From contig OZ251225.1 in NCBI GenBank assembly GCA_965240325.2, positions 2,666,001 to 2,730,000 of the forward strand: 64,000 nucleotides of DNA, in the 5' to 3' direction. Below are positions 1,848-22,579 of this stretch, one piece after another; positions within the stretch are counted from its first letter, which is position 1; each line of letters opens with the position of its first letter. Position numbers and translations under genes: made by a program. The notes under the pieces are model-generated. The model saw nothing but the letters and a program-made list of their open reading frames with translations. It did no database searches and had not been told where the DNA came from. Source of the DNA: Rebecca billardiae RCC1528 (taxonomy: Eukaryota > Protista > Haptophyta).

Positions 1848-1850
<3 letters not shown>

Positions 1851-2156
1851 CAGGGAACGCGTCTTGAGGCATGACGGTCGAGGTCGCGTGACGAGCTTCG
1901 GCTCTTGTTTGCGGTGGTGAGCACAACGTGTTTTCGTGTGCTTGGGCTCATGTTTCGTTCATTTCAGAATTTTCTGGAATGCTTCGAGATGCCGCCGCAG
2001 CCATGCTGTCCTGCTGTATTTTAGGATGAGGTTCAGGTTGATTTTGGAGGATTTTGTGCGAGCGCCGCCGCAGCGGTCGCGCCGCCACTGTGTGACTGCG
2101 AGTAAAATGTTGGATTGGAAATTGGAAATCACTGTAGATTGGCGATTCCTTTGACA
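1848..2156 (-). repeat. 3' LTR (309 bp, TG...CA)
   Basis: Matches 22580-22702 plus 24196-24381 with no differences seen by eye. Confidence 0.93.
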
Positions 2157-2170
2157 CCCCCCCTCAATCC
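2157..2170 (-). other. Polypurine tract (GGATTGAGGGGGGG on the minus strand)
   Basis: Immediately precedes the 3' LTR on the minus strand. TTGAGGGGG is typical of Copia PPTs. Confidence 0.85.
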
Positions 2171-2421
2171 AATATGCGCTCGTCTGTGAGGACTAAGCTT
2201 GGATTATGAGTGATTTTGGGCTTGGTATTGTTTGTGCATCTGTGTGCATGAGTGAATTGGAGTCAGTAATGGTTGCCAATGCCAGGATACGGGTCATGTG
2301 CTGGGACTTCCGTGTGACGGTTTTGGGTAACCCGAGTCAGTCCTGGGCTTATTTGCACAATTTGTTCACTCTTTGGCCTTGATCTTGGACCTTGTTATTG
2401 GGTCATGCCCTGCCTTGATAG

Positions 2422-4033
2422 TTAATCATAGGCATCCGGAGCAGGAATATCCAGGAAATGGATACGCTCCTTGGGAAATTTGTTGGCTCCCTTGTTTTTG
2501 CCTTTGTTGTAATTGTCGGCCTTGGGGCGTAGCTCTGGGTGGAGCTTCCAACACTGCTGGGCAGTATGGTTCTTGAGACCACAGTGAGTGCACCGTTTGC
2601 CGGTGTCCGAGTTATTCGGCCCGCGCTCGCCATTGGCTGGAGCCTTTTGGGCCTGAGCGGCGAAGACTTCGGCGCCCTCAAAGTCACCGCGTCGCCGCGT
2701 GCCTTGCTGATAATCAGCATTTTGGCGTATCTTGGAATAGTTTTCGGTCTCTCTCCCCTTGGTATTGTTCTGATGGAGTAGCTTCATTGAGCCGTGCCGT
2801 TTGTAGGCATCTTCCATCTGGGCCATTATCTGGTCAGTGTTATCCACACATTGCTCGGGCGTGAGCGCTCCGAAGTGCGAGATAACTGACTCGTAGACTT
2901 GGGGATGGTCGTGCATGCTGTTATACAGCTTGAAGACCAACATCGTAGCATCGTCCAGATTCCCATATCGAGATGAGCGGACTTGCTCGACGGATTTCTT
3001 GATAATGTCCGATGCGCCAATGGGCGACACCTTTGTCGGGTATAACTTCAGGAATTCATCCCTGAGTTCGGACATAGTTGTGATCTTGAGCTCGCGCTCA
3101 AATATCTGTAGCAGCAGCGCCAGATCCAAGTAGTTCTTGGTCGGATCGCTGATGTGCAGCTTCGATTCCAGATAGGCGAATAACTGAGGCTCAATAGAGT
3201 CCTTCAGCTGCTTGAATATCGCTGCCGCAGATCGATCGTAGACCGATCCGATCTTGTTGGCGTCAGCGTTGTCAGCCTTGTATGGATCGATTTTGGCTGC
3301 GTCTTTCACCCATTTGTCTTTGGCAATGAGTTGAAAGCCGGATAGCTTGCTATCCTTGGGCTCCATTATGTCAGGTGTGACATCTGAGGATTTGCCCTTG
3401 TAGTAGGTGCTCACTTCTGCGAGTGCATCCCGTATCGCGCTGTGTACCGCGCGCTTGGATTTCAAAGCCGACTGTGTCAGCTTGTATGTGGCGGGTGTAT
3501 CCACTCCTGCCGAGGATTCGCGTGCCATGAACACACGTTCCTTCTTGTTTTGATTAGAGTCTGTGACTCCTCCTTCGATGACTATCCAGTCACGTTTCTT
3601 CGACTCAAGTGCATTGGTCGATATGTCGCGCGCGCTCTGTGGCGATTCGCGCTCTACCTTCGAGCGAGGAGTGACCCTCGTCGAGGCTGTGGTGCCTTCT
3701 TTGGGCTTCTTCACGCTCGTTCTGTCCAGCGGAGATGCATGCGCATCCGCGGCAGCTTCGGCGGAATACTCTTCCTTGCAAGAGTGTGGCGTTGTGATGG
3801 CTGACGCAGCTGATGCATGCGCACGCGCGTCGCGCTCGCCAACTTGGTTTTGCTGCGGCTTTGCCGTCAAGCAGGTGTATGATGCCCCCCCTGCATCGTA
3901 TGCGCTTCCTACGTTCGACGCGAGTCGATACGTGCCAGACGAGGACTCTGCCGTCTCTGCGGCGGTCATCTCGCGGCTGCTTGTGTCGCTCGTGGCGAGC
4001 AGCTCGGCTTCGGAAGCCATCGTGAGGCTTGTA
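2422..4033 (-). CDS. gag: Gag-like protein with a C-terminal CX2CX4HX4C zinc knuckle; 5' part cut off by the insertion train
   Basis: CTHCGLKNHTAQQC at about 2550-2593, preceded by a helical region, inside the LTR pair. ORF-track residues upstream of 4035 come from element X. Confidence 0.8.
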
Positions 4034-4035
4034 TA

Positions 4036-4825
4036 GGGACCCACAAATTTAGTTGCCGGCTGCAGCAGGCACGACTTTGTCTCAGCCCGCACGCCCGCTA
4101 CGCGCCGACCCGGGCAGAGCCCATCCGCCCGCGCATGCACCAGGCCCAGCCGCGTCAGTACATACCCACCCGGCCGCGGCACCCGCGCTCTGTGCGCCAC
4201 GGTGTCGATGCGCCCGGCAGTCGGTGCGCATGCACGAGCCAGCCGGCGGGCAGCTACGGGCTGGTTTTCGGCGTGGAGCGCGGTCGTGTGAGCTGCATTA
4301 ATTCAGCTGACCCCCGGCTTTTGTGCATTCGGGAGTCGTGCTGCTACGGTGGGCGTGCCACGCGCCAACTCGACGCTGGCAAAATTAGGCGACGAAAGTG
4401 CACGCGCAGCCACACGCAGCCCATATTGATGCTCTCGGAGCAGGCTCGGGCATGCACTCGATCGGCTCTGGCTGACGGCAGCGCCAAGCTGGCGGCGCGG
4501 CGCGAGGGTGCATGCGTGGCGTGGGCGGAGCTACGTCGCACACGCACCGCGCGGCGCGCGGCTCAGCGCACGGAGGCTGCCGACAGCCGGCGGCACGCAG
4601 GCAGGTCTGCTCGCCGCCAGTCGAGCTCGCCGGCCGCCGGGTACCAAACGTCAACCCAGGATGCACAGCCACGCCTATTTGCGAGGACTCGAGCAATCGG
4701 GTCCGGGCGCACCTCATGTGCACGGCAGTGGAGTGGGCCAAGTACGCCCCTGGTATGGTGGCGCGCCGCTGCTTTGCTGCGCTGATATGGCGAACAATGT
4801 CGGGAGGCTTAAACTTGTGAGGGAC
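4036..4825. mobile_element. Element X copy 1: 790-bp non-autonomous TA-flanked element with imperfect inverted termini
   Basis: TA|GGGACCCACAAATTTAG ... CTTAAACTTGTGAGGGAC|TA (13/19 inverted match including TA). Directly repeated at 20824-21613. Confidence 0.72.
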
Positions 4826-4832
4826 TAAGTGA

Positions 4833-6928
4833 GCAGCCTCGGCTGAGGCCGTGAGCTGCCGTAGGCTGATCTGACCCGACAAAAGTCGGCGCGCGAGCGC
4901 GCGCGCGCGCGGCGCGGCGCCGCCCCGCTGGCACGTGGGCTCGGTGTGCCTGGGCCGCGCCGAGTGCCCCGCACCCGGATCTCGCCCAGCTAGCTCGTCC
5001 TCGCCGCGCTCTGAGGCCCCCGTAGCAGTCGTAGCTGCTCGCCGCCGCCGCAGATCGTGAAGACCAGCTGCTGTCAGCTGCTCGCTCTGAGCCGGGACAT
5101 GGGGCCGCGTGGAGGAGACGCCGTGCGGCCGGGCGCGCGCGTGCGCGTCGAGCGGCACCCGGGCGCACTGCTCACGTGTCGGCGCGCCCGCCCGGCGCGC
5201 GCATCATCGCTCAGTCGCGCCGCTCTGCTGAGCTAGCCGCCGCTGGTCGCAGCCGTCGGCTGAGGCCGTGAGCTGCCGTAAGCTGATCTGACCCGACAAA
5301 AGTCGGCGCGCGAGCGCGCGCGCGCGGCGCGCCGCGCCACCTCGCTGGCACGTGGGCTCGGTGCGCCTGGGCCGCGCCGAGCGTCCCGCACCCCGATCGC
5401 GCCCAGCCCGCGCGTCCTCGCCGCGCTCTGAGGTCCCCGTAGCAGTCGTAGCTGCTCGCCGCCGCCGCAGATCGTGAAGACCAGTTGCTGTCAGCTGCTC
5501 GCTCTGAGCCGGGACATGGGGCCGCGAGGAGGAGGCGCCGTGCGGCCGGGCGCGCGCGTGCGCGTCGAGCGGCCCCGGGGCGCACTGCTCACGCGTCGGC
5601 GTGCCCGCCCGGCGCGCGCATCATCGCTCAGTCGCGCCGCTCTGCTGAGCTAGCCGCCGCTGGTCGCAGCCGTCGGCTGAGGCCGTGAGCTGCCGTCAGC
5701 TGATCTGACCCGACAAAAGTCGGCGCGAGCGCGCGCGCGCGCGCGGCGCCGCGCCGCCCCGCTGGCACGTGGGCTCGGTGTGCCTGGGCCACGCAGAGCA
5801 CCCCGCACCCGGATCTCGCCCAGCTAGCTCGTCCTCGCCGCGCTCTGAGGCCCCCGTAGCAGTCGTAGCTGCTCGCCGCCGCCGCAGATCGTGAAGACCA
5901 GCTGCTGTCAGCTGCTCGCTCTGAGCCGGGACATGGGGCCGCGAGGAGGAGGCGCCGTGCGGCCGGGCGCGCGCGTGCGCGTCGAGCGGCCCCGGGGCGC
6001 ACTGCTCACGCGTCGGCGTGCCCGCCCGGCGCGCGCATCATCGCTCAGTCGCGCCGCTCTGCTGAGCTAGCCGCCGCTGGTCGCAGCCGTCGGCTGAGGC
6101 CGTGAGCTGCCGTCAGCTGATCTGACCCGACAAAAGTCGGCGCGAGCGCGCGCGCGCGCGCGGCGCCGCGCCGCCCCGCTGGCACGTGGGCTCGGTGTGC
6201 CTGGGCCACGCAGAGCACCCCGCACCCGGATCTCGCCCAGCTAGCTCGTCCTCGCCGCGCTCTGAGGCCCCCGTAGCAGTCGTAGCTGCTCGCCGCCGCC
6301 GCAGATCGTGAAGACCAGCTGCTGTCAGCTGCTCGCTCTGAGCCGGGACATGGGGCCGCGAGGAGGAGGCGCCGTGCGGCCGGGCGCGCGCGTGCGCGTC
6401 GAGCGGCCCCGGGGCGCACTGCTCACGCGTCGGCGTGCCCGCCCGGCGCGCGCATCATCGCTCAGTCGCGCCGCTCTGCTGAGCTAGCCGCCGCTGGTCG
6501 CAGCCGTCGGCTGAGGCCGTGAGCTGCCGTAGGCTGATCTGACCCGACAAAAGTCGGCGCGCGAGCGCGCGCGCGCGCGCGGCGCGGCGCCGCCCCGCTG
6601 GCACGTGGGCTCGGTGTGCCTGGGCCGCGCCGAGTGCCCCGCACCCCGATCTCGCCCAGCTAGCTCGTCCTCGCCGCGCTCTGAGGCCCCCGTAGCAGTC
6701 GTAGCTGCTCGCCGCCGCCGCAGATCGTGAAGACCAGTTGCTGTCAGCTGCTCGCTCTGAGCCGGGACATGGGGCCGCGTGGAGGAGGCGCCGTGCGGCC
6801 GGGCGCGCGCGCGCGCGTCGAGCGGCCCCGGGGCGCACTGCTCACGCGTCGGCGTGCCCGCCCGGCGCGCACATCATCGCTCAGTCGCGCCGCTCTGCTG
6901 AGCTAGCCGCCGCTGGTCGCAGCCGTCG
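4833..6928. repeat. Tandem array of five ~417-bp GC-rich units inside T copy 1
   Basis: AAAAGTCGG recurs at 4881, 5298, 5715, 6132 and 6549. Units differ by SNPs; units 3 and 4 look identical. Confidence 0.95.
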
Positions 6929-7044
6929 TGAGACGTGACGTTAGACGTAGAGTAAGCTATAGCCTATAGGCTGATATGATATGACTCGAGATCTACTATA
7001 CTGAGCAGCTAATAAACTATACCATCATTGTCCGACACTGCTCT

Positions 7045-8346
7045 TCAGCGCACGCGCTGCTCACCCTTGGTCTCGACGCAGTCCTGCAGCCGACGCCGAT
7101 AGGATTTGAACAGCGCCTGGATGAACTTCTTGTCGTTCCGTACCTCCTCGAACTTAGCCTTCACCACCTCCTCGAACTCCTTGAAGGTTGGCCGCTGCTT
7201 GCTCGGGTTGTCGGTGCACCACTTGTGCTTCCATGCGTTGAGAAGCTGCTCCACGCGCGCCCAGACATGCTCAATGAGCGACAAGTCGGCGCTGTTCGGC
7301 GGCCAGCTACGGCCCGGCTGACCCTCGGTCGACTTGGGGCCAAGGTGTCCCTCGGGGCCAAACCGCTCGTCGAGCCATTGGCGCACAGCCAGCGCCGTGT
7401 GGGGTGAGGCACTGTCCTGCTGGAAGATCATCTGTCTGATGAAGTTGCCGAAGAGCGCCTGGGCCTCCTTGTCCAGGAAAGGCAGCACGTCGTTCAGGTA
7501 CTCCTTCCAGCACACGCCACGGCACTGCTTGCCGCGACCATTCTCATGCGTGCGGCCGTGAGTGCCCGTGGCAAAATAGAGCGGCGTGATGCCGCGAGAG
7601 CAGGCGCCGGCGTAGCCATGGATCACGCAGTCACCTGCCTGGACCTGGTTCAGCTTGCGCTTGGGCTCGTCACGCAGCGTCCACGACATCACCGTGCTCC
7701 GGTTCGTGACGTCGAACTTGAAGTACTTCGAGTCGGTGAAGAACAGCCTGTCAACCATCGCCTTGACTCTCTGCAGCCACCGTGCGAACGCCACCCGCTT
7801 CTTCGCCTGCTGAGCCGTGATCTGCTTCCTCACCTTGAGCGGCTCCCAATCCATCTTCTTCCGCGCCGCGCGGCGTAGCGTCTCGTCGGAGACGTCGAGC
7901 GCGGACGCATCGAGCGATCCAGCACCGACGGCGCGGCACGCAGCCTTCCGCACACTCTGACCAGCCGGCCCGGCGCTGAGCTCGGACGTAAGCGCCGCCT
8001 GCGCCTTGGCACTGAGGCGTGGGCGTGGACCGCGCTTCGGCTTCCCGTCAGCATCGATGTGCCAGCCCTCCGTGTGCCAGTCCATGAACCACTTCTTCAT
8101 CGTCTTCTCGGTGACCTCGGCCGACCGCGCCGCCCTCTGGAAAGCTGAGGCCAACGGAGAGCCTTCATTGAGGCACAGCACGCACGCGCCGATCGCATGG
8201 TGAAACCTCTCCGCAGGGCCCAGGGCCTTCGGGTTGTAATCCAGAGCAATACACTCCCGCGATACCCGCCTGTTCGGAGCGTAGCCGACGCGGTGGGCGC
8301 CTTTGCGCCCGCGCCGATCTTTGGGCGCGGTCGGCGCGCGGCCCAT
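7045..8346 (-). CDS. IS630/Tc1/mariner transposase, 433 aa (DD47E)
   Basis: FFTDSK (D1), FQQDSASPH (D2) and WPPNSADLSLIEHVW (E) correspond to Tc1 FTDE, QQDNA.H and WP.SPDLNPIE.W. Basic/HTH-like N-terminus. Confidence 0.93.
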   Translation of the reverse strand: MGRAPTAPKDRRGRKGAHRVGYAPNRRVSRECIALDYNPKALGPAERFHHAIGACVLCLNEGSPLASAFQRAARSAEVTEKTMKKWFMDWHTEGWHIDADGKPKRGPRPRLSAKAQAALTSELSAGPAGQSVRKAACRAVGAGSLDASALDVSDETLRRAARKKMDWEPLKVRKQITAQQAKKRVAFARWLQRVKAMVDRLFFTDSKYFKFDVTNRSTVMSWTLRDEPKRKLNQVQAGDCVIHGYAGACSRGITPLYFATGTHGRTHENGRGKQCRGVCWKEYLNDVLPFLDKEAQALFGNFIRQMIFQQDSASPHTALAVRQWLDERFGPEGHLGPKSTEGQPGRSWPPNSADLSLIEHVWARVEQLLNAWKHKWCTDNPSKQRPTFKEFEEVVKAKFEEVRNDKKFIQALFKSYRRRLQDCVETKGEQRVR

Positions 8347-8831
8347 CAGCCGCCGCCGGCTGCTTGGCCACGACCGAAGATGAGTGCACGTTACGTCCCG
8401 AGCCGCCCAAAGTTGATCTTACAGCTGACGAAGCGGTGTGGCCTCTATTCGAACTCGTTCCGTCCATGGCGAGCGCCCCATCGACGCAGCCGCCGCGTGC
8501 GCTGGGGCCGCACGCCCTCGCGGATGTGCGCTGGGCACGAGCTCGGCGCCACGGGTTGAGCTCGTCGAGCTATGACAAGCGGCGTGGCGCAAGTCCAACC
8601 CAGTGGAGGCCCCAACTGCCGGCCCCGCCGCCGCGCGGGAGCGTCCGATTAACCTCAGCTGCTCTGCGCAAGATGTGGGCTCCTGTGCCCCACCAACTCG
8701 CCGGAGGCGGACGACGCGCTGGGATCGCTGCACGGCGGGAATATCCCCGACCCATGTGGACCGACGCCGGCCTCGCTCGCCGTCGCCCTCGCCCTCGTTC
8801 CGACTTTTCTACTACCTGCTCACTTAAGTGA

Positions 8832-10927
8832 GCAGCCTCGGCTGAGGCCGTGAGCTGCCGTAGGCTGATCTGACCCGACAAAAGTCGGCGCGCGAGCGCG
8901 CGCGCGCGCGGCGCGGCGCCGCCCCGCTGGCACGTGGGCTCGGTGTGCCTGGGCCGCGCCGAGTGCCCCGCACCCGGATCTCGCCCAGCTAGCTCGTCCT
9001 CGCCGCGCTCTGAGGCCCCCGTAGCAGTCGTAGCTGCTCGCCGCCGCCGCAGATCGTGAAGACCAGCTGCTGTCAGCTGCTCGCTCTGAGCCGGGACATG
9101 GGGCCGCGTGGAGGAGACGCCGTGCGGCCGGGCGCGCGCGTGCGCGTCGAGCGGCACCCGGGCGCACTGCTCACGTGTCGGCGCGCCCGCCCGGCGCGCG
9201 CATCATCGCTCAGTCGCGCCGCTCTGCTGAGCTAGCCGCCGCTGGTCGCAGCCGTCGGCTGAGGCCGTGAGCTGCCGTAAGCTGATCTGACCCGACAAAA
9301 GTCGGCGCGCGAGCGCGCGCGCGCGGCGCGCCGCGCCACCTCGCTGGCACGTGGGCTCGGTGCGCCTGGGCCGCGCCGAGCGTCCCGCACCCCGATCGCG
9401 CCCAGCCCGCGCGTCCTCGCCGCGCTCTGAGGTCCCCGTAGCAGTCGTAGCTGCTCGCCGCCGCCGCAGATCGTGAAGACCAGTTGCTGTCAGCTGCTCG
9501 CTCTGAGCCGGGACATGGGGCCGCGAGGAGGAGGCGCCGTGCGGCCGGGCGCGCGCGTGCGCGTCGAGCGGCCCCGGGGCGCACTGCTCACGCGTCGGCG
9601 TGCCCGCCCGGCGCGCGCATCATCGCTCAGTCGCGCCGCTCTGCTGAGCTAGCCGCCGCTGGTCGCAGCCGTCGGCTGAGGCCGTGAGCTGCCGTCAGCT
9701 GATCTGACCCGACAAAAGTCGGCGCGAGCGCGCGCGCGCGCGCGGCGCCGCGCCGCCCCGCTGGCACGTGGGCTCGGTGTGCCTGGGCCACGCAGAGCAC
9801 CCCGCACCCGGATCTCGCCCAGCTAGCTCGTCCTCGCCGCGCTCTGAGGCCCCCGTAGCAGTCGTAGCTGCTCGCCGCCGCCGCAGATCGTGAAGACCAG
9901 CTGCTGTCAGCTGCTCGCTCTGAGCCGGGACATGGGGCCGCGAGGAGGAGGCGCCGTGCGGCCGGGCGCGCGCGTGCGCGTCGAGCGGCCCCGGGGCGCA
10001 CTGCTCACGCGTCGGCGTGCCCGCCCGGCGCGCGCATCATCGCTCAGTCGCGCCGCTCTGCTGAGCTAGCCGCCGCTGGTCGCAGCCGTCGGCTGAGGCC
10101 GTGAGCTGCCGTCAGCTGATCTGACCCGACAAAAGTCGGCGCGAGCGCGCGCGCGCGCGCGGCGCCGCGCCGCCCCGCTGGCACGTGGGCTCGGTGTGCC
10201 TGGGCCACGCAGAGCACCCCGCACCCGGATCTCGCCCAGCTAGCTCGTCCTCGCCGCGCTCTGAGGCCCCCGTAGCAGTCGTAGCTGCTCGCCGCCGCCG
10301 CAGATCGTGAAGACCAGCTGCTGTCAGCTGCTCGCTCTGAGCCGGGACATGGGGCCGCGAGGAGGAGGCGCCGTGCGGCCGGGCGCGCGCGTGCGCGTCG
10401 AGCGGCCCCGGGGCGCACTGCTCACGCGTCGGCGTGCCCGCCCGGCGCGCGCATCATCGCTCAGTCGCGCCGCTCTGCTGAGCTAGCCGCCGCTGGTCGC
10501 AGCCGTCGGCTGAGGCCGTGAGCTGCCGTAGGCTGATCTGACCCGACAAAAGTCGGCGCGCGAGCGCGCGCGCGCGCGCGGCGCGGCGCCGCCCCGCTGG
10601 CACGTGGGCTCGGTGTGCCTGGGCCGCGCCGAGTGCCCCGCACCCCGATCTCGCCCAGCTAGCTCGTCCTCGCCGCGCTCTGAGGCCCCCGTAGCAGTCG
10701 TAGCTGCTCGCCGCCGCCGCAGATCGTGAAGACCAGTTGCTGTCAGCTGCTCGCTCTGAGCCGGGACATGGGGCCGCGTGGAGGAGGCGCCGTGCGGCCG
10801 GGCGCGCGCGCGCGCGTCGAGCGGCCCCGGGGCGCACTGCTCACGCGTCGGCGTGCCCGCCCGGCGCGCACATCATCGCTCAGTCGCGCCGCTCTGCTGA
10901 GCTAGCCGCCGCTGGTCGCAGCCGTCG
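8832..10927. repeat. 5 x 417-bp array in T copy 2
   Basis: Same unit order and variants as copy 1. Confidence 0.93.
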
Positions 10928-11043
10928 TGAGACGTGACGTTAGACGTAGAGTAAGCTATAGCCTATAGGCTGATATGATATGACTCGAGATCTACTATAC
11001 TGAGCAGCTAATAAACTATACCATCATTGTCCGACACTGCTCT

Positions 11044-12345
11044 TCAGCGCACGCGCTGCTCACCCTTGGTCTCGACGCAGTCCTGCAGCCGACGCCGATA
11101 GGATTTGAACAGCGCCTGGATGAACTTCTTGTCGTTCCGTACCTCCTCGAACTTAGCCTTCACCACCTCCTCGAACTCCTTGAAGGTTGGCCGCTGCTTG
11201 CTCGGGTTGTCGGTGCACCACTTGTGCTTCCATGCGTTGAGAAGCTGCTCCACGCGCGCCCAGACATGCTCAATGAGCGACAAGTCGGCGCTGTTCGGCG
11301 GCCAGCTACGGCCCGGCTGACCCTCGGTCGACTTGGGGCCAAGGTGTCCCTCGGGGCCAAACCGCTCGTCGAGCCATTGGCGCACAGCCAGCGCCGTGTG
11401 GGGTGAGGCACTGTCCTGCTGGAAGATCATCTGTCTGATGAAGTTGCCGAAGAGCGCCTGGGCCTCCTTGTCCAGGAAAGGCAGCACGTCGTTCAGGTAC
11501 TCCTTCCAGCACACGCCACGGCACTGCTTGCCGCGACCATTCTCATGCGTGCGGCCGTGAGTGCCCGTGGCAAAATAGAGCGGCGTGATGCCGCGAGAGC
11601 AGGCGCCGGCGTAGCCATGGATCACGCAGTCACCTGCCTGGACCTGGTTCAGCTTGCGCTTGGGCTCGTCACGCAGCGTCCACGACATCACCGTGCTCCG
11701 GTTCGTGACGTCGAACTTGAAGTACTTCGAGTCGGTGAAGAACAGCCTGTCAACCATCGCCTTGACTCTCTGCAGCCACCGTGCGAACGCCACCCGCTTC
11801 TTCGCCTGCTGAGCCGTGATCTGCTTCCTCACCTTGAGCGGCTCCCAATCCATCTTCTTCCGCGCCGCGCGGCGTAGCGTCTCGTCGGAGACGTCGAGCG
11901 CGGACGCATCGAGCGATCCAGCACCGACGGCGCGGCACGCAGCCTTCCGCACACTCTGACCAGCCGGCCCGGCGCTGAGCTCGGACGTAAGCGCCGCCTG
12001 CGCCTTGGCACTGAGGCGTGGGCGTGGACCGCGCTTCGGCTTCCCGTCAGCATCGATGTGCCAGCCCTCCGTGTGCCAGTCCATGAACCACTTCTTCATC
12101 GTCTTCTCGGTGACCTCGGCCGACCGCGCCGCCCTCTGGAAAGCTGAGGCCAACGGAGAGCCTTCATTGAGGCACAGCACGCACGCGCCGATCGCATGGT
12201 GAAACCTCTCCGCAGGGCCCAGGGCCTTCGGGTTGTAATCCAGAGCAATACACTCCCGCGATACCCGCCTGTTCGGAGCGTAGCCGACGCGGTGGGCGCC
12301 TTTGCGCCCGCGCCGATCTTTGGGCGCGGTCGGCGCGCGGCCCAT
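11044..12345 (-). CDS. Transposase, copy 2
   Basis: Translation identical to 7045-8346. Confidence 0.92.
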   Translation of the reverse strand: MGRAPTAPKDRRGRKGAHRVGYAPNRRVSRECIALDYNPKALGPAERFHHAIGACVLCLNEGSPLASAFQRAARSAEVTEKTMKKWFMDWHTEGWHIDADGKPKRGPRPRLSAKAQAALTSELSAGPAGQSVRKAACRAVGAGSLDASALDVSDETLRRAARKKMDWEPLKVRKQITAQQAKKRVAFARWLQRVKAMVDRLFFTDSKYFKFDVTNRSTVMSWTLRDEPKRKLNQVQAGDCVIHGYAGACSRGITPLYFATGTHGRTHENGRGKQCRGVCWKEYLNDVLPFLDKEAQALFGNFIRQMIFQQDSASPHTALAVRQWLDERFGPEGHLGPKSTEGQPGRSWPPNSADLSLIEHVWARVEQLLNAWKHKWCTDNPSKQRPTFKEFEEVVKAKFEEVRNDKKFIQALFKSYRRRLQDCVETKGEQRVR

Positions 12346-12830
12346 CAGCCGCCGCCGGCTGCTTGGCCACGACCGAAGATGAGTGCACGTTACGTCCCGA
12401 GCCGCCCAAAGTTGATCTTACAGCTGACGAAGCGGTGTGGCCTCTATTCGAACTCGTTCCGTCCATGGCGAGCGCCCCATCGACGCAGCCGCCGCGTGCG
12501 CTGGGGCCGCACGCCCTCGCGGATGTGCGCTGGGCACGAGCTCGGCGCCACGGGTTGAGCTCGTCGAGCTATGACAAGCGGCGTGGCGCAAGTCCAACCC
12601 AGTGGAGGCCCCAACTGCCGGCCCCGCCGCCGCGCGGGAGCGTCCGATTAACCTCAGCTGCTCTGCGCAAGATGTGGGCTCCTGTGCCCCACCAACTCGC
12701 CGGAGGCGGACGACGCGCTGGGATCGCTGCACGGCGGGAATATCCCCGACCCATGTGGACCGACGCCGGCCTCGCTCGCCGTCGCCCTCGCCCTCGTTCC
12801 GACTTTTCTACTACCTGCTCACTTAAGTGA

Positions 12831-14926
12831 GCAGCCTCGGCTGAGGCCGTGAGCTGCCGTAGGCTGATCTGACCCGACAAAAGTCGGCGCGCGAGCGCGC
12901 GCGCGCGCGGCGCGGCGCCGCCCCGCTGGCACGTGGGCTCGGTGTGCCTGGGCCGCGCCGAGTGCCCCGCACCCGGATCTCGCCCAGCTAGCTCGTCCTC
13001 GCCGCGCTCTGAGGCCCCCGTAGCAGTCGTAGCTGCTCGCCGCCGCCGCAGATCGTGAAGACCAGCTGCTGTCAGCTGCTCGCTCTGAGCCGGGACATGG
13101 GGCCGCGTGGAGGAGACGCCGTGCGGCCGGGCGCGCGCGTGCGCGTCGAGCGGCACCCGGGCGCACTGCTCACGTGTCGGCGCGCCCGCCCGGCGCGCGC
13201 ATCATCGCTCAGTCGCGCCGCTCTGCTGAGCTAGCCGCCGCTGGTCGCAGCCGTCGGCTGAGGCCGTGAGCTGCCGTAAGCTGATCTGACCCGACAAAAG
13301 TCGGCGCGCGAGCGCGCGCGCGCGGCGCGCCGCGCCACCTCGCTGGCACGTGGGCTCGGTGCGCCTGGGCCGCGCCGAGCGTCCCGCACCCCGATCGCGC
13401 CCAGCCCGCGCGTCCTCGCCGCGCTCTGAGGTCCCCGTAGCAGTCGTAGCTGCTCGCCGCCGCCGCAGATCGTGAAGACCAGTTGCTGTCAGCTGCTCGC
13501 TCTGAGCCGGGACATGGGGCCGCGAGGAGGAGGCGCCGTGCGGCCGGGCGCGCGCGTGCGCGTCGAGCGGCCCCGGGGCGCACTGCTCACGCGTCGGCGT
13601 GCCCGCCCGGCGCGCGCATCATCGCTCAGTCGCGCCGCTCTGCTGAGCTAGCCGCCGCTGGTCGCAGCCGTCGGCTGAGGCCGTGAGCTGCCGTCAGCTG
13701 ATCTGACCCGACAAAAGTCGGCGCGAGCGCGCGCGCGCGCGCGGCGCCGCGCCGCCCCGCTGGCACGTGGGCTCGGTGTGCCTGGGCCACGCAGAGCACC
13801 CCGCACCCGGATCTCGCCCAGCTAGCTCGTCCTCGCCGCGCTCTGAGGCCCCCGTAGCAGTCGTAGCTGCTCGCCGCCGCCGCAGATCGTGAAGACCAGC
13901 TGCTGTCAGCTGCTCGCTCTGAGCCGGGACATGGGGCCGCGAGGAGGAGGCGCCGTGCGGCCGGGCGCGCGCGTGCGCGTCGAGCGGCCCCGGGGCGCAC
14001 TGCTCACGCGTCGGCGTGCCCGCCCGGCGCGCGCATCATCGCTCAGTCGCGCCGCTCTGCTGAGCTAGCCGCCGCTGGTCGCAGCCGTCGGCTGAGGCCG
14101 TGAGCTGCCGTCAGCTGATCTGACCCGACAAAAGTCGGCGCGAGCGCGCGCGCGCGCGCGGCGCCGCGCCGCCCCGCTGGCACGTGGGCTCGGTGTGCCT
14201 GGGCCACGCAGAGCACCCCGCACCCGGATCTCGCCCAGCTAGCTCGTCCTCGCCGCGCTCTGAGGCCCCCGTAGCAGTCGTAGCTGCTCGCCGCCGCCGC
14301 AGATCGTGAAGACCAGCTGCTGTCAGCTGCTCGCTCTGAGCCGGGACATGGGGCCGCGAGGAGGAGGCGCCGTGCGGCCGGGCGCGCGCGTGCGCGTCGA
14401 GCGGCCCCGGGGCGCACTGCTCACGCGTCGGCGTGCCCGCCCGGCGCGCGCATCATCGCTCAGTCGCGCCGCTCTGCTGAGCTAGCCGCCGCTGGTCGCA
14501 GCCGTCGGCTGAGGCCGTGAGCTGCCGTAGGCTGATCTGACCCGACAAAAGTCGGCGCGCGAGCGCGCGCGCGCGCGCGGCGCGGCGCCGCCCCGCTGGC
14601 ACGTGGGCTCGGTGTGCCTGGGCCGCGCCGAGTGCCCCGCACCCCGATCTCGCCCAGCTAGCTCGTCCTCGCCGCGCTCTGAGGCCCCCGTAGCAGTCGT
14701 AGCTGCTCGCCGCCGCCGCAGATCGTGAAGACCAGTTGCTGTCAGCTGCTCGCTCTGAGCCGGGACATGGGGCCGCGTGGAGGAGGCGCCGTGCGGCCGG
14801 GCGCGCGCGCGCGCGTCGAGCGGCCCCGGGGCGCACTGCTCACGCGTCGGCGTGCCCGCCCGGCGCGCACATCATCGCTCAGTCGCGCCGCTCTGCTGAG
14901 CTAGCCGCCGCTGGTCGCAGCCGTCG
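12831..14926. repeat. 5 x 417-bp array in T copy 3
   Basis: Same unit order and variants as copy 1. Confidence 0.93.
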
Positions 14927-15042
14927 TGAGACGTGACGTTAGACGTAGAGTAAGCTATAGCCTATAGGCTGATATGATATGACTCGAGATCTACTATACT
15001 GAGCAGCTAATAAACTATACCATCATTGTCCGACACTGCTCT

Positions 15043-16344
15043 TCAGCGCACGCGCTGCTCACCCTTGGTCTCGACGCAGTCCTGCAGCCGACGCCGATAG
15101 GATTTGAACAGCGCCTGGATGAACTTCTTGTCGTTCCGTACCTCCTCGAACTTAGCCTTCACCACCTCCTCGAACTCCTTGAAGGTTGGCCGCTGCTTGC
15201 TCGGGTTGTCGGTGCACCACTTGTGCTTCCATGCGTTGAGAAGCTGCTCCACGCGCGCCCAGACATGCTCAATGAGCGACAAGTCGGCGCTGTTCGGCGG
15301 CCAGCTACGGCCCGGCTGACCCTCGGTCGACTTGGGGCCAAGGTGTCCCTCGGGGCCAAACCGCTCGTCGAGCCATTGGCGCACAGCCAGCGCCGTGTGG
15401 GGTGAGGCACTGTCCTGCTGGAAGATCATCTGTCTGATGAAGTTGCCGAAGAGCGCCTGGGCCTCCTTGTCCAGGAAAGGCAGCACGTCGTTCAGGTACT
15501 CCTTCCAGCACACGCCACGGCACTGCTTGCCGCGACCATTCTCATGCGTGCGGCCGTGAGTGCCCGTGGCAAAATAGAGCGGCGTGATGCCGCGAGAGCA
15601 GGCGCCGGCGTAGCCATGGATCACGCAGTCACCTGCCTGGACCTGGTTCAGCTTGCGCTTGGGCTCGTCACGCAGCGTCCACGACATCACCGTGCTCCGG
15701 TTCGTGACGTCGAACTTGAAGTACTTCGAGTCGGTGAAGAACAGCCTGTCAACCATCGCCTTGACTCTCTGCAGCCACCGTGCGAACGCCACCCGCTTCT
15801 TCGCCTGCTGAGCCGTGATCTGCTTCCTCACCTTGAGCGGCTCCCAATCCATCTTCTTCCGCGCCGCGCGGCGTAGCGTCTCGTCGGAGACGTCGAGCGC
15901 GGACGCATCGAGCGATCCAGCACCGACGGCGCGGCACGCAGCCTTCCGCACACTCTGACCAGCCGGCCCGGCGCTGAGCTCGGACGTAAGCGCCGCCTGC
16001 GCCTTGGCACTGAGGCGTGGGCGTGGACCGCGCTTCGGCTTCCCGTCAGCATCGATGTGCCAGCCCTCCGTGTGCCAGTCCATGAACCACTTCTTCATCG
16101 TCTTCTCGGTGACCTCGGCCGACCGCGCCGCCCTCTGGAAAGCTGAGGCCAACGGAGAGCCTTCATTGAGGCACAGCACGCACGCGCCGATCGCATGGTG
16201 AAACCTCTCCGCAGGGCCCAGGGCCTTCGGGTTGTAATCCAGAGCAATACACTCCCGCGATACCCGCCTGTTCGGAGCGTAGCCGACGCGGTGGGCGCCT
16301 TTGCGCCCGCGCCGATCTTTGGGCGCGGTCGGCGCGCGGCCCAT
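15043..16344 (-). CDS. Transposase, copy 3
   Basis: Translation identical to 7045-8346. Confidence 0.92.
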   Translation of the reverse strand: MGRAPTAPKDRRGRKGAHRVGYAPNRRVSRECIALDYNPKALGPAERFHHAIGACVLCLNEGSPLASAFQRAARSAEVTEKTMKKWFMDWHTEGWHIDADGKPKRGPRPRLSAKAQAALTSELSAGPAGQSVRKAACRAVGAGSLDASALDVSDETLRRAARKKMDWEPLKVRKQITAQQAKKRVAFARWLQRVKAMVDRLFFTDSKYFKFDVTNRSTVMSWTLRDEPKRKLNQVQAGDCVIHGYAGACSRGITPLYFATGTHGRTHENGRGKQCRGVCWKEYLNDVLPFLDKEAQALFGNFIRQMIFQQDSASPHTALAVRQWLDERFGPEGHLGPKSTEGQPGRSWPPNSADLSLIEHVWARVEQLLNAWKHKWCTDNPSKQRPTFKEFEEVVKAKFEEVRNDKKFIQALFKSYRRRLQDCVETKGEQRVR

Positions 16345-16829
16345 CAGCCGCCGCCGGCTGCTTGGCCACGACCGAAGATGAGTGCACGTTACGTCCCGAG
16401 CCGCCCAAAGTTGATCTTACAGCTGACGAAGCGGTGTGGCCTCTATTCGAACTCGTTCCGTCCATGGCGAGCGCCCCATCGACGCAGCCGCCGCGTGCGC
16501 TGGGGCCGCACGCCCTCGCGGATGTGCGCTGGGCACGAGCTCGGCGCCACGGGTTGAGCTCGTCGAGCTATGACAAGCGGCGTGGCGCAAGTCCAACCCA
16601 GTGGAGGCCCCAACTGCCGGCCCCGCCGCCGCGCGGGAGCGTCCGATTAACCTCAGCTGCTCTGCGCAAGATGTGGGCTCCTGTGCCCCACCAACTCGCC
16701 GGAGGCGGACGACGCGCTGGGATCGCTGCACGGCGGGAATATCCCCGACCCATGTGGACCGACGCCGGCCTCGCTCGCCGTCGCCCTCGCCCTCGTTCCG
16801 ACTTTTCTACTACCTGCTCACTTAAGTGA

Positions 16830-18925
16830 GCAGCCTCGGCTGAGGCCGTGAGCTGCCGTAGGCTGATCTGACCCGACAAAAGTCGGCGCGCGAGCGCGCG
16901 CGCGCGCGGCGCGGCGCCGCCCCGCTGGCACGTGGGCTCGGTGTGCCTGGGCCGCGCCGAGTGCCCCGCACCCGGATCTCGCCCAGCTAGCTCGTCCTCG
17001 CCGCGCTCTGAGGCCCCCGTAGCAGTCGTAGCTGCTCGCCGCCGCCGCAGATCGTGAAGACCAGCTGCTGTCAGCTGCTCGCTCTGAGCCGGGACATGGG
17101 GCCGCGTGGAGGAGACGCCGTGCGGCCGGGCGCGCGCGTGCGCGTCGAGCGGCACCCGGGCGCACTGCTCACGTGTCGGCGCGCCCGCCCGGCGCGCGCA
17201 TCATCGCTCAGTCGCGCCGCTCTGCTGAGCTAGCCGCCGCTGGTCGCAGCCGTCGGCTGAGGCCGTGAGCTGCCGTAAGCTGATCTGACCCGACAAAAGT
17301 CGGCGCGCGAGCGCGCGCGCGCGGCGCGCCGCGCCACCTCGCTGGCACGTGGGCTCGGTGCGCCTGGGCCGCGCCGAGCGTCCCGCACCCCGATCGCGCC
17401 CAGCCCGCGCGTCCTCGCCGCGCTCTGAGGTCCCCGTAGCAGTCGTAGCTGCTCGCCGCCGCCGCAGATCGTGAAGACCAGTTGCTGTCAGCTGCTCGCT
17501 CTGAGCCGGGACATGGGGCCGCGAGGAGGAGGCGCCGTGCGGCCGGGCGCGCGCGTGCGCGTCGAGCGGCCCCGGGGCGCACTGCTCACGCGTCGGCGTG
17601 CCCGCCCGGCGCGCGCATCATCGCTCAGTCGCGCCGCTCTGCTGAGCTAGCCGCCGCTGGTCGCAGCCGTCGGCTGAGGCCGTGAGCTGCCGTCAGCTGA
17701 TCTGACCCGACAAAAGTCGGCGCGAGCGCGCGCGCGCGCGCGGCGCCGCGCCGCCCCGCTGGCACGTGGGCTCGGTGTGCCTGGGCCACGCAGAGCACCC
17801 CGCACCCGGATCTCGCCCAGCTAGCTCGTCCTCGCCGCGCTCTGAGGCCCCCGTAGCAGTCGTAGCTGCTCGCCGCCGCCGCAGATCGTGAAGACCAGCT
17901 GCTGTCAGCTGCTCGCTCTGAGCCGGGACATGGGGCCGCGAGGAGGAGGCGCCGTGCGGCCGGGCGCGCGCGTGCGCGTCGAGCGGCCCCGGGGCGCACT
18001 GCTCACGCGTCGGCGTGCCCGCCCGGCGCGCGCATCATCGCTCAGTCGCGCCGCTCTGCTGAGCTAGCCGCCGCTGGTCGCAGCCGTCGGCTGAGGCCGT
18101 GAGCTGCCGTCAGCTGATCTGACCCGACAAAAGTCGGCGCGAGCGCGCGCGCGCGCGCGGCGCCGCGCCGCCCCGCTGGCACGTGGGCTCGGTGTGCCTG
18201 GGCCACGCAGAGCACCCCGCACCCGGATCTCGCCCAGCTAGCTCGTCCTCGCCGCGCTCTGAGGCCCCCGTAGCAGTCGTAGCTGCTCGCCGCCGCCGCA
18301 GATCGTGAAGACCAGCTGCTGTCAGCTGCTCGCTCTGAGCCGGGACATGGGGCCGCGAGGAGGAGGCGCCGTGCGGCCGGGCGCGCGCGTGCGCGTCGAG
18401 CGGCCCCGGGGCGCACTGCTCACGCGTCGGCGTGCCCGCCCGGCGCGCGCATCATCGCTCAGTCGCGCCGCTCTGCTGAGCTAGCCGCCGCTGGTCGCAG
18501 CCGTCGGCTGAGGCCGTGAGCTGCCGTAGGCTGATCTGACCCGACAAAAGTCGGCGCGCGAGCGCGCGCGCGCGCGCGGCGCGGCGCCGCCCCGCTGGCA
18601 CGTGGGCTCGGTGTGCCTGGGCCGCGCCGAGTGCCCCGCACCCCGATCTCGCCCAGCTAGCTCGTCCTCGCCGCGCTCTGAGGCCCCCGTAGCAGTCGTA
18701 GCTGCTCGCCGCCGCCGCAGATCGTGAAGACCAGTTGCTGTCAGCTGCTCGCTCTGAGCCGGGACATGGGGCCGCGTGGAGGAGGCGCCGTGCGGCCGGG
18801 CGCGCGCGCGCGCGTCGAGCGGCCCCGGGGCGCACTGCTCACGCGTCGGCGTGCCCGCCCGGCGCGCACATCATCGCTCAGTCGCGCCGCTCTGCTGAGC
18901 TAGCCGCCGCTGGTCGCAGCCGTCG
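16830..18925. repeat. 5 x 417-bp array in T copy 4
   Basis: Same unit order and variants as copy 1. Confidence 0.93.
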
Positions 18926-19041
18926 TGAGACGTGACGTTAGACGTAGAGTAAGCTATAGCCTATAGGCTGATATGATATGACTCGAGATCTACTATACTG
19001 AGCAGCTAATAAACTATACCATCATTGTCCGACACTGCTCT

Positions 19042-20343
19042 TCAGCGCACGCGCTGCTCACCCTTGGTCTCGACGCAGTCCTGCAGCCGACGCCGATAGG
19101 ATTTGAACAGCGCCTGGATGAACTTCTTGTCGTTCCGTACCTCCTCGAACTTAGCCTTCACCACCTCCTCGAACTCCTTGAAGGTTGGCCGCTGCTTGCT
19201 CGGGTTGTCGGTGCACCACTTGTGCTTCCATGCGTTGAGAAGCTGCTCCACGCGCGCCCAGACATGCTCAATGAGCGACAAGTCGGCGCTGTTCGGCGGC
19301 CAGCTACGGCCCGGCTGACCCTCGGTCGACTTGGGGCCAAGGTGTCCCTCGGGGCCAAACCGCTCGTCGAGCCATTGGCGCACAGCCAGCGCCGTGTGGG
19401 GTGAGGCACTGTCCTGCTGGAAGATCATCTGTCTGATGAAGTTGCCGAAGAGCGCCTGGGCCTCCTTGTCCAGGAAAGGCAGCACGTCGTTCAGGTACTC
19501 CTTCCAGCACACGCCACGGCACTGCTTGCCGCGACCATTCTCATGCGTGCGGCCGTGAGTGCCCGTGGCAAAATAGAGCGGCGTGATGCCGCGAGAGCAG
19601 GCGCCGGCGTAGCCATGGATCACGCAGTCACCTGCCTGGACCTGGTTCAGCTTGCGCTTGGGCTCGTCACGCAGCGTCCACGACATCACCGTGCTCCGGT
19701 TCGTGACGTCGAACTTGAAGTACTTCGAGTCGGTGAAGAACAGCCTGTCAACCATCGCCTTGACTCTCTGCAGCCACCGTGCGAACGCCACCCGCTTCTT
19801 CGCCTGCTGAGCCGTGATCTGCTTCCTCACCTTGAGCGGCTCCCAATCCATCTTCTTCCGCGCCGCGCGGCGTAGCGTCTCGTCGGAGACGTCGAGCGCG
19901 GACGCATCGAGCGATCCAGCACCGACGGCGCGGCACGCAGCCTTCCGCACACTCTGACCAGCCGGCCCGGCGCTGAGCTCGGACGTAAGCGCCGCCTGCG
20001 CCTTGGCACTGAGGCGTGGGCGTGGACCGCGCTTCGGCTTCCCGTCAGCATCGATGTGCCAGCCCTCCGTGTGCCAGTCCATGAACCACTTCTTCATCGT
20101 CTTCTCGGTGACCTCGGCCGACCGCGCCGCCCTCTGGAAAGCTGAGGCCAACGGAGAGCCTTCATTGAGGCACAGCACGCACGCGCCGATCGCATGGTGA
20201 AACCTCTCCGCAGGGCCCAGGGCCTTCGGGTTGTAATCCAGAGCAATACACTCCCGCGATACCCGCCTGTTCGGAGCGTAGCCGACGCGGTGGGCGCCTT
20301 TGCGCCCGCGCCGATCTTTGGGCGCGGTCGGCGCGCGGCCCAT
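19042..20343 (-). CDS. Transposase, copy 4
   Basis: Translation identical to 7045-8346. Confidence 0.92.
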   Translation of the reverse strand: MGRAPTAPKDRRGRKGAHRVGYAPNRRVSRECIALDYNPKALGPAERFHHAIGACVLCLNEGSPLASAFQRAARSAEVTEKTMKKWFMDWHTEGWHIDADGKPKRGPRPRLSAKAQAALTSELSAGPAGQSVRKAACRAVGAGSLDASALDVSDETLRRAARKKMDWEPLKVRKQITAQQAKKRVAFARWLQRVKAMVDRLFFTDSKYFKFDVTNRSTVMSWTLRDEPKRKLNQVQAGDCVIHGYAGACSRGITPLYFATGTHGRTHENGRGKQCRGVCWKEYLNDVLPFLDKEAQALFGNFIRQMIFQQDSASPHTALAVRQWLDERFGPEGHLGPKSTEGQPGRSWPPNSADLSLIEHVWARVEQLLNAWKHKWCTDNPSKQRPTFKEFEEVVKAKFEEVRNDKKFIQALFKSYRRRLQDCVETKGEQRVR

Positions 20344-20823
20344 CAGCCGCCGCCGGCTGCTTGGCCACGACCGAAGATGAGTGCACGTTACGTCCCGAGC
20401 CGCCCAAAGTTGATCTTACAGCTGACGAAGCGGTGTGGCCTCTATTCGAACTCGTTCCGTCCATGGCGAGCGCCCCATCGACGCAGCCGCCGCGTGCGCT
20501 GGGGCCGCACGCCCTCGCGGATGTGCGCTGGGCACGAGCTCGGCGCCACGGGTTGAGCTCGTCGAGCTATGACAAGCGGCGTGGCGCAAGTCCAACCCAG
20601 TGGAGGCCCCAACTGCCGGCCCCGCCGCCGCGCGGGAGCGTCCGATTAACCTCAGCTGCTCTGCGCAAGATGTGGGCTCCTGTGCCCCACCAACTCGCCG
20701 GAGGCGGACGACGCGCTGGGATCGCTGCACGGCGGGAATATCCCCGACCCATGTGGACCGACGCCGGCCTCGCTCGCCGTCGCCCTCGCCCTCGTTCCGA
20801 CTTTTCTACTACCTGCTCACTTA

Positions 20824-21613
20824 GGGACCCACAAATTTAGTTGCCGGCTGCAGCAGGCACGACTTTGTCTCAGCCCGCACGCCCGCTACGCGCCGACCCG
20901 GGCAGAGCCCATCCGCCCGCGCATGCACCAGGCCCAGCCGCGTCAGTACATACCCACCCGGCCGCGGCACCCGCGCTCTGTGCGCCACGGTGTCGATGCG
21001 CCCGGCAGTCGGTGCGCATGCACGAGCCAGCCGGCGGGCAGCTACGGGCTGGTTTTCGGCGTGGAGCGCGGTCGTGTGAGCTGCATTAATTCAGCTGACC
21101 CCCGGCTTTTGTGCATTCGGGAGTCGTGCTGCTACGGTGGGCGTGCCACGCGCCAACTCGACGCTGGCAAAATTAGGCGACGAAAGTGCACGCGCAGCCA
21201 CACGCAGCCCATATTGATGCTCTCGGAGCAGGCTCGGGCATGCACTCGATCGGCTCTGGCTGACGGCAGCGCCAAGCTGGCGGCGCGGCGCGAGGGTGCA
21301 TGCGTGGCGTGGGCGGAGCTACGTCGCACACGCACCGCGCGGCGCGCGGCTCAGCGCACGGAGGCTGCCGACAGCCGGCGGCACGCAGGCAGGTCTGCTC
21401 GCCGCCAGTCGAGCTCGCCGGCCGCCGGGTACCAAACGTCAACCCAGGATGCACAGCCACGCCTATTTGCGAGGACTCGAGCAATCGGGTCCGGGCGCAC
21501 CTCATGTGCACGGCAGTGGAGTGGGCCAAGTACGCCCCTGGTATGGTGGCGCGCCGCTGCTTTGCTGCGCTGATATGGCGAACAATGTCGGGAGGCTTAA
21601 ACTTGTGAGGGAC
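20824..21613. mobile_element. Element X copy 2 (790 bp, same orientation as copy 1)
   Basis: Same sequence as 4036-4825, flanked by TA on both sides. Confidence 0.72.
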
Positions 21614-21615
21614 TA

Positions 21616-22579
21616 TAGTTTTGGGGCAAACGTATTTGTTTGGGTCAGGCGCATCAACAATAAATGCGGCCGCTGACTTAATGCTTGAGCTCGCTGTGAC
21701 AGAGTCACGCGTCGTAGCATCTTGGAGCATAGTTTGCTCTGCCAGACCATACAGGTCGTTTGAGTCGCACTCATCGGTGCTAATGTCATCGTTCGATCGG
21801 TCAGACTCAGACACAGAGTCGTGCGAGCGAGGCTGCAGACTGACTAGTGACTGCGGTCACGACCGCGCTGTCATTGGCGGCGGCCAGAAGGCCAGCACGC
21901 CGAGCAGCGTCGGCAGGCTCGAGGGCCTCGACGGTCGAAGCGGCATCAGCGGCAGCAGCGTCGAGCGCTACATCTGCCCCGGAACGCTCGGTGACCTCGT
22001 TCGATGACTCGGAGGCAGCAAGGCACTCCTTGAGCTGCGGGCACGCGGCCACGCGCTGTTCCGCCGCGCTTGCGGGCGCAAAGTCCCGGGCGGTAGTTGT
22101 TGAGATCCCCTGCGCAACGACGTGCGTGCGGATGGAGTGGCGCGATGGCGGGGGATGCGAGCGGTAACGCTCCTCCTCACCGCGCTGTGCGCGAACCTCC
22201 TCCTCAAGGTGATCCTTGATTGACTCGGCATGAAGCCGGTCGATGCGCGGTGCAATCGCACTCGACGCGTGGCTGCCTGAATTCAGGTCAGCGGTGTTGC
22301 CAGGCCCGGAGGCGCTGGAGATGGGCTTGCGGAGAAGCGTGAGCTTCTCGCCTTGCCGGTTCTTCTCAGCCTGCATGCCCCTCAGGGCAGCGGCGAGGTA
22401 GTCTGGCGTGCGCTTGCGCGCAACCGCCGATGAGCCGCGCGGCATTGCCGCGCGCTCGGCCACGCCTGGCTTCAACCCAATGAGGGGAGCAACTGGGGCG
22501 GGCTGATGGCCGTTCACGTCCTTGCCGCTGTTCTCATCGTCTCCATCCTTGCCCAAGTTCTCCCAGCACCGTGCTAGCA
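21616..22579 (-). pseudogene. 5' internal region of the LTR element; probable frameshifted N-terminal part of gag
   Basis: Overlapping open frames (21807-22658 and 21616-21967) with S/A/E/D-rich composition like the start of the Gag ORF. Confidence 0.45.

Follow-up and report, generated by a model that had tools for sequence, protein, structure and literature searches.

KolobokP is a lineage of DNA transposons of animals that was published as "a unique eukaryotic lineage" (Kojima and Bao 2022, Mob DNA 13:24; PMC9587614). Its members have the structure LTDR-INT-LTDR, in which long terminal direct repeats (LTDRs) carrying short terminal inverted repeats (TIRs) of their own flank an internal segment (INT), and solo LTDRs also occur (PMC9587614). 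Multimers take the forms (LTDR-INT)n-LTDR and LTDR-(INT)n-LTDR, n = 4 included, with target-site duplications (TSDs) at their outer ends and one TSD-like motif, one TATA, at the INT-INT joint (PMC9587614). LTDR length is evolutionarily constrained, INT-LTDR remnants are common, and an "induced unequal crossover" model has been built on the His-Me finger nuclease of these elements, a captured homing nuclease with which multimerisation was linked (PMC9587614). The subject here is a 17.6-kb train of transposon modules in the haptophyte Rebecca billardiae RCC1528. It lies in a window of 64,000 nucleotides (GenBank assembly GCA_965240325.2, contig OZ251225.1, positions 2,666,001 to 2,730,000), and window positions are used throughout. 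With a probability of about three in four, the train represents one insertion of a two-module transposon of the Tc1/mariner superfamily in which LTDRs called X flank an internal module called T that was amplified locally to four copies. The non-coding X of ~790 bp, with its own short TIRs, would act as the LTDR on both sides of T. T would combine a transposase gene with a 417-bp satellite made out of one end of T, and a resident T with five satellite repeats would have given rise to the four copies, joined by single TAs.

The train is laid out as X (790 bp), four T (3997 bp each) and a second X, with one TA at each internal joint. A first-pass annotation of this DNA had placed single-TA junctions at 4034, 4826, 8825, 12824, 16823, 20822 and 21614, and direct reading of the sequence finds all seven where it located them. 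Its statement that the copies of each kind are identical and co-oriented also holds, as sequence comparison gives 0 differences between X at 4036-4825 and X at 20824-21613 (790 bp each) and 0 differences among the four T copies, and all six elements point the same way. The window contains no N, and the copy number of four T is that of the assembly. The X-T4-X pattern is beyond chance.

The outer borders of the train are built differently from its joints. Both read TATA, that is, CTTG-TATA-GGGAC... on the left (4032-4035) and ...GGGAC-TATA-GTTT on the right (21614-21617). The site is in a dispersed host repeat, and 9/9 paralogues of that repeat have the empty form GAGGCTTG-TA-GTTTTGGG with one TA; with a gap of 0-8 nt permitted, anchors of 14 + 14 nt recovered one paralogue and anchors of 8 + 8 nt recovered nine. 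Neither TATA nor TATATA is present at the empty site in any of the nine. The target therefore had one TA, and the duplicated bases are 4032-4033 and 21616-21617. The inserted unit is TA-X-...-X-TA. Its termini account for TA at 4034 and at 21614, so neither is a TA shared with the host. Removal of the train had been thought to restore CTTGTA-TA-TAGTTT, a prediction contradicted by the TATA borders and by the single TA of the nine paralogues. With TA on both sides of the unit and one TA in the empty sites, the duplication is the TA duplication of IS630/Tc1/mariner elements. The same paralogues exclude two other readings, duplication of the 4 bp TATA and a target that is strictly TATATA. Across the genome, X...X units are bounded by TATA at 14/14 readable outer borders, whose flanks are unrelated to each other, and TATA is also found at the sole readable outer border of a distant relative (metagenome contig L063, described below). 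Internal joints have a single TA in all 34 cases readable in sequence. No further empty site was found among the genome sequences retrieved, and no tRNA gene is present at the insertion sites whose flanks look tRNA-like.

Pattern searches of the 72-Mb assembly returned 21 T starts and 22 T ends, each of them 2 bp from an X or another T, and no solo T. Every one of the 21-22 young T copies belongs to an X...X block, and the 11 sites of these blocks are dispersed and have unique flanks. Seven of the sites hold X-T-X monomers (two on C1 and one each on C10, C17, C33, C35 and C39). A multimer on C3 reads X-T-[200-N gap]-X-T-X, with both T of the same inferred length (5667 bp), and a second train, X-T3-X with three T of 4830 bp, lies at C30:254854-270931. 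A long array of ~61 kb on C1 reads X-T-X-T-X-T-X-T-T-X; most of this array and the interior of the C30 train were judged from pattern coordinates. There is also one X-TA-X pair (C1:2318315-2319896), and solo X are present on C8, C13, C10 and C27. The relative orientation of X and T is constant at all loci. Thus any pair of a left and a right X end is movable, since solo X, X-T-X and multimers all exist; the mobile form is TA-X...X-TA, which duplicates a TA target, and T shows no movement of its own in this genome. The ends on which the transposase acts are probably, as judged from the sequences, the outer ends of X.

The length of T ranges from 3996 to 11084 bp across loci through the number of 417-bp units, yet within a train it is equal (4 x 3997 bp in the window and 3 x 4830 bp on C30), as it is within the C3 dimer. 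Two dispersed monomers match T copies of the C1 array in length (8165 against 8165 and 7748 against 7750 bp). The block layout and these lengths together indicate that X...X blocks move as units and that multimers feed monomers, and the equal lengths within a train indicate that extra T copies arise locally from a resident T. The family is small, with ~22 T and ~35 X copies, and it is young, because its reading frames are intact and its X copies are 100% identical. Five separate insertion sites fall within ~115 kb (C1:2318315-2431804), a stretch with the X-X pair, the big array, one monomer and the inverted flank of the array; this clustering agrees with the idea of local hopping out of a master array. 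The flanks of the C1 array (C1:2327505-2329004 and C1:2390504-2392003) are reverse complements of each other, identical at 1497 of 1500 positions, and both ends of the array are X right ends. This palindrome may reflect a genuine large duplication with its centre in the array; the other possibility is a fold-back misassembly.

X begins with TAGGG and finishes with GGGACTA, and its ends, TA included, align at 13 of 18 positions in register (TAGGGACCCACAAATTTA and TAGTCCCTCACAAGTTTA). T ends in the perfect 9-bp inverted repeat AGTGAGCAG, flanked by TA, and these two sets of TIRs lie within the modules only. In the genome X has ~35 left ends, and 30 of its copies are 100% identical. Neither Pfam nor Rfam gives a match for X, the X modules of relatives share no open reading frame (ORF) with it, and T likewise contains no Rfam family. 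Single-nucleotide polymorphisms (SNPs) among 28 X copies are of three kinds only. G2T is carried by the X pair of the C17 unit and also by the solo X on C13, the X pair of the C33 unit has C647T, and the sole private change is in one X of a C1 unit. The two X of a unit are co-derived, as long terminal repeats (LTRs) are, and a change shared by both X is not expected of a plain cut-and-paste composite. The shared SNPs point to one of three sources, namely a circle or concatemer stage in which one X was the template, sub-excision out of homogenised multimers, or gene conversion. Insertions of ~1.69 kb split two further X copies (C35:669272-671758 and C10:268671-271163), one in each and at different positions, and may represent another element that favours X.

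The satellite of T1 consists of five tandem 417-bp units (4833-6928), and an equivalent span is present in T2 to T4. Each unit opens with a near copy of nucleotides 6-70 of the left end of T, including the motif AAAAGTCGG, and this motif also occurs 14 nt from the opposite end of T. The number of units varies by locus from 5 to about 22. The minus strand of T carries a 433-codon frame that is intact in all four window copies and in 11/11 T copies compared. The description of the four T as intact autonomous copies is right as to the reading frame, but T has never moved alone in this genome. Two T subfamilies exist, which are nine substitutions and one indel apart in 1.9 kb (~0.5%).

The window transposase has no Pfam match at default thresholds; searched alone, it reached only DDE_3 with E = 0.013, and a word-indexed protein search returned the query itself only. 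An exhaustive protein search found 401 relatives at E <= 1e-3. In an alignment of 30 sequences D205, D311 and E359 are invariant, giving the catalytic triad of DDE/D enzymes, and Pfam matches among the relatives are DDE_3 in 26/30, HTH_32 in 23/30 and HTH_Tnp_Tc3_2 in 17/30. The family profile matches the catalytic domain of SB100X (5cr4) with E = 8.5e-38 and Mos1 with E = 3e-15, and profile positions 10-141 match the DNA-binding domain of Tc3 (1u78) with E = 1.5e-7. The N-terminus is a bipartite paired-like helix-turn-helix (HTH), which in the window protein is recognised through the alignment and not by a match of its own. The product of T is thus a Tc1-like transposase of the DD47E type. 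Apart from the transposase, T has no detectable protein and specifically no nuclease, and the other ORFs of T or X belong to no Pfam family, either in the window or in relatives.

The two-module layout is not confined to this genome. Metagenome contig L063, whose transposase is 34% identical, reads TATA-X'(792 bp)-TA-T'(2200 bp)-TA-T'-TA-X'-TA-T' and includes a T'-T' joint. L064 is an X'+T' unit of 2996 bp that closes on itself by terminal overlap, and L066, which carries transposase P0005, is a self-closing X+T unit of 3217 bp with an X'' of 793 bp. The X modules of these two other lineages start with TAGGGG and finish with CCCCTA. The three modules X, X' and X'' have no DNA or protein similarity between lineages, and their lengths are 790, 792 and 793 bp with transposases 32-34% identical, a constraint on LTDR length like that of KolobokP, here in three lineages only. 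Since relatives 32-34% identical share the same X/T build, it is a design of the family and not the outcome of three chance insertions. In a maximum-likelihood tree P0001, P0004 and P0005, the transposases of the elements established as having these repeats, form one supported group (96/91) with P0002 and P0070. In this group and a branch next to it, P0001 to P0005 are DD41-47E, whereas most other members of the alignment are DD32-39E and two are DD44E. The contigs of P0002, P0003, P0027 and P0070 are too short to reveal an architecture, and L065 has only a possible T-TA-GGG... joint. The closest metagenomic relatives (L068, L069, L072, L073 and L077) are mostly self-closing or tandem, with units of 2028-3199 bp and ambiguous module borders, and more distant ones have classical inverted ends. 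The two-module design is passed down within a clade of Tc1-like transposases with DD41-47E spacing. A tandem repeat of ~382 bp lies beside the transposase gene on L067.

The T-T joints could be produced by the transposase itself. In Tc1 and Tc3 the 3' cut is made at the end of the element and the 5' cut 2 nt inside it. If each module ends with TA as its last two bases, Tc1-type cleavage at any joint would leave a self-complementary TA overhang. By one route, a break after T on one chromatid would be rejoined with a break before T on the sister; by another, an excised and circularised T would recombine with the resident T. Either route would give a precise head-to-tail T-T joint with a single TA, and loss of T would give X-TA-X, which is seen once. 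A local process specific for the ends of T is the favoured model for these joints. Amplification of T through a circle or rolling-circle intermediate had been suggested in the first-pass annotation, and the equal T lengths in the window and on C30 fit a local amplification, with the circle as a hypothetical intermediate. It is also possible, if somewhat doubtful, that the life cycle passes through a form with a single X, either a circular X+T unit or a head-to-tail concatemer, whose modules are cut, circularised and re-ligated like restriction fragments. If so, the single-X stage would allow both terminal repeats to be renewed from a single template, in the way that reverse transcription renews LTRs, and trains would arise from it as well. 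LTR-like ends would then be reached through DNA alone, in the most widespread superfamily of cut-and-paste transposons.

Several points weigh against the interpretation of the train as one two-module insertion with a locally amplified T. The ends of X and the ends of T have no similarity beyond chance, and binding of the T transposase to X ends is a prediction. X is identical across two T subfamilies ~0.5% apart, although some four differences are expected in it. X and T accordingly lack a single common genealogy, which a strictly unitary element would not predict. That the TA belongs to the element was concluded from one insertion site, though with nine paralogues. The cohesive-overhang model alone would fail to explain why all joints are head-to-tail, chromosome continuity apart. 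The related C3 array contains a 200-N gap (C3:3676769-3676968), a sign that such X/T arrays were hard to assemble, and the assembler could have shaped the four-copy number and even the perfect identity of the copies.

The different genealogies of X and T would fit a scheme, the first mechanism offered by the first-pass annotation, in which the two are independent TA-inserting elements and further copies are guided stepwise into the adjoining TA by a transposase that sits on the ends of resident copies. In agreement with such end-targeting, the T-T, X-T, T-X and X-X joints all have exactly one TA, the perfect TIR of T is flanked by TA, and the six new T copies of the trains all adjoin a T and are found nowhere else in 72 Mb. 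However, true insertion borders are TATA in 14/14 cases against one TA in 34/34 joints. Because the mobile form brings its own TA, TATA and not a lone TA is what ordinary insertion next to an end should leave. The orientation of X and T, which never varies between loci and holds in distant relatives as well, and the equal T lengths within a train are also better explained by local duplication. Landing at TA ends fits poorly and is unlikely.

The train could instead have begun as (X-T)4-X, formed by unequal crossover between X copies, and then lost three internal X by precise excision. Multimers of the type (X-T)n-X exist on C1 and C3, solo X at new sites show that X is mobile, and the INT-INT joints of KolobokP with one TSD-like motif have been ascribed to LTDR excision (PMC9587614). 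Against this, X is absent at 6/10 inner positions and at 0/22 outer positions (Fisher p = 2e-4), and no T in the genome lacks its outer X, unlike the common INT-LTDR remnants of KolobokP. Random excision of X is therefore insufficient. Three independent precise excisions would be needed in the window and two more on C30, which leaves internal loss of X a distinctly unlikely origin of the train.

The T copies are identical base for base, satellite included, as they would be if one T, or fewer than four, had been expanded by the assembler, and the gap in the sister array on C3 and the suspicious palindromic arrangement on C1 add to this concern. T-T joints nevertheless occur at three separate loci with differing T lengths and again in the independent metagenome assembly of a distant relative, and assemblers usually collapse identical tandem copies and do not multiply them; an artefact is accordingly improbable. 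A non-autonomous LTR retrotransposon (LARD- or TRIM-like) with X as its LTR is next to impossible despite the identical long direct repeats, solo repeats, tandem multimers and SNPs common to both repeats, as the duplication is TA and not 4-6 bp, X runs from TAGGG to GGGACTA with TIRs and not from TG to CA, no sequence resembling a primer-binding site or polypurine tract is seen at the T ends, and the only gene is that of a Tc1-like DDE transposase, with no reverse transcriptase (RT) found in T, X or relatives. The shared-SNP pattern is the only LTR-like feature on which membership among LTR retrotransposons, LARDs or TRIMs could be argued.

The coordinates of the train and its host element are collected in the table.

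Table. Features of the transposon train and of the element that contains it (window positions)
Feature	Position	Strand	Basis or remark
Left target-site duplication TA	4032..4033		9/9 paralogous empty sites CTTG-TA-GTTT; filled site CTTG-TATA-X
Left-end terminal TA of mobile unit	4034..4035	+	TATA at 14/14 outer borders genome-wide
X1, non-coding 790-bp LTDR with own short imperfect TIRs	4036..4825	+	identical to X2
X-T joint, single TA	4826..4827		sequence
T1, internal module, 3997 bp	4828..8824	+	9-bp perfect TIR AGTGAGCAG; 5 x 417-bp satellite; transposase ORF
Tc1-like transposase ORF in T1, 433 aa, D205/D311/E359 (DD47E)	7045..8346	-	alignment and profiles
Same transposase ORF in T2, T3, T4	11044-12345, 15043-16344, 19042-20343	-	identical T copies
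T-T joint, single TA	8825..8826		centre of 20-bp palindrome CTGCTCACT-TA-AGTGAGCAG
T2, identical to T1	8827..12823	+	sequence comparison
T-T joint, single TA	12824..12825		sequence
T3, identical to T1	12826..16822	+	sequence comparison
T-T joint, single TA	16823..16824		sequence
T4, identical to T1	16825..20821	+	sequence comparison
T-X joint, single TA	20822..20823		sequence
X2, right LTDR	20824..21613	+	identical to X1
Right-end terminal TA of mobile unit	21614..21615	+	TATA borders; paralogous empty sites
Right target-site duplication TA	21616..21617		paralogous empty sites
Host, small LTR-type element, no RT found	1849..24381	+	train nested in internal region

The host element has LTRs of 308 bp (TG..CA) that are 100% identical, the left at 1849-2156 and the right in two parts (22581-22702 and 24195-24381) on either side of a 1.49-kb insert (22703-24194). 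Its interior of 2.8 kb contains no recognisable RT. The element is present in at least 10 genomic copies and in the window is inserted into an (AT)n microsatellite (1768-1848). The ORF at 52-1107 on the plus strand encodes a clear pyridoxal phosphate (PLP)-dependent enzyme of Cys/Met metabolism (PF01053, E = 3e-94); an ordinary gene thus adjoins the nested transposons.

Compared with known systems, the X/T family resembles Tc1, Tc3, Sleeping Beauty and Mos1 in its transposase fold, DDE triad, paired-like HTH N-terminus, TA duplication and TA-flanked TIRs. Classical Tc1/mariner elements have a single gene between two inverted repeats, whereas here the ends lie on two direct 790-bp modules that bound the unit. 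DD47E, the unit-terminal TA and the frequent single-TA multimers are further departures from the classical form. Bari1 of Drosophila melanogaster forms a head-to-tail tandem array of a single Tc1-like family at one heterochromatic site. The trains share with it the head-to-tail copies of a Tc1-like element; they differ in that they are short, have a second module on either side and can move as trains, as dispersed sites with TA duplications show.

In bacterial composites the flanking insertion sequence (IS) codes for the transposase and the centre is cargo. The X/T family is similar to these composites, to IS26-type pseudo-compound transposons and to (IS30)2 dimers in that two direct TIR-bearing modules mobilise a centre and that abutted ends lie 2 bp apart. 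Circular X+T units resembling a "translocatable unit" are plausible, the contigs L064 and L066 being self-closing. Among the mechanisms proposed in the first-pass annotation, the composite transposon is closest to the evidence, as 11 dispersed X...X blocks with unique flanks and TA duplication are present. Its bacterial style and opportunistic origin have to be given up, because it is the "cargo" that holds the transposase and because relatives 32-34% identical have inherited the same X/T build. With non-coding flanks, a centre that codes for the transposase and an architecture handed down within a supported clade, the family was excluded from the bacterial-type composites.

The closest match in layout is KolobokP. 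Both have LTDR-INT-LTDR units with TIR-bearing LTDRs, solo repeats, multimers with and without internal LTDRs, TSDs at the outer ends of these multimers, a single motif at INT-INT joints and a constrained LTDR length. The first-pass annotation saw in the train a candidate for an undescribed system, which is too strong since LTDR-(INT)n-LTDR forms, including n = 4, are known from KolobokP (PMC9587614). KolobokP has a DDD/E transposase of the Kolobok superfamily and a His-Me finger (His-Cys box) nuclease, whereas the X/T family has a Tc1-like DD47E transposase and no second protein was found in it. KolobokP occurs in animals, has TSDs of 3-5 bp and leaves INT-LTDR remnants, while the X/T family occurs in a GC-rich alga and in metagenomes, duplicates TA and lacks such remnants. 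Only the internal module of the X/T family combines perfect TA-flanked TIRs with a satellite derived from its end. No paper describing such a design in Tc1/mariner was found in the open-access literature. The occurrence of the same architecture in an unrelated superfamily without the nuclease suggests a convergent, transposase-driven design and not an oddity of Kolobok. [quoted passage not shown] As a small young family with clean single-TA joints and a defined TA-terminated form, it is a tractable system for studying how transposon ends are homogenised and how transposons seed satellites and tandem arrays. The X/T family has the layout of KolobokP but is not KolobokP; it is an LTDR composite-like DNA transposon of the Tc1/mariner superfamily, seen in the window in its LTDR-(INT)4-LTDR form.

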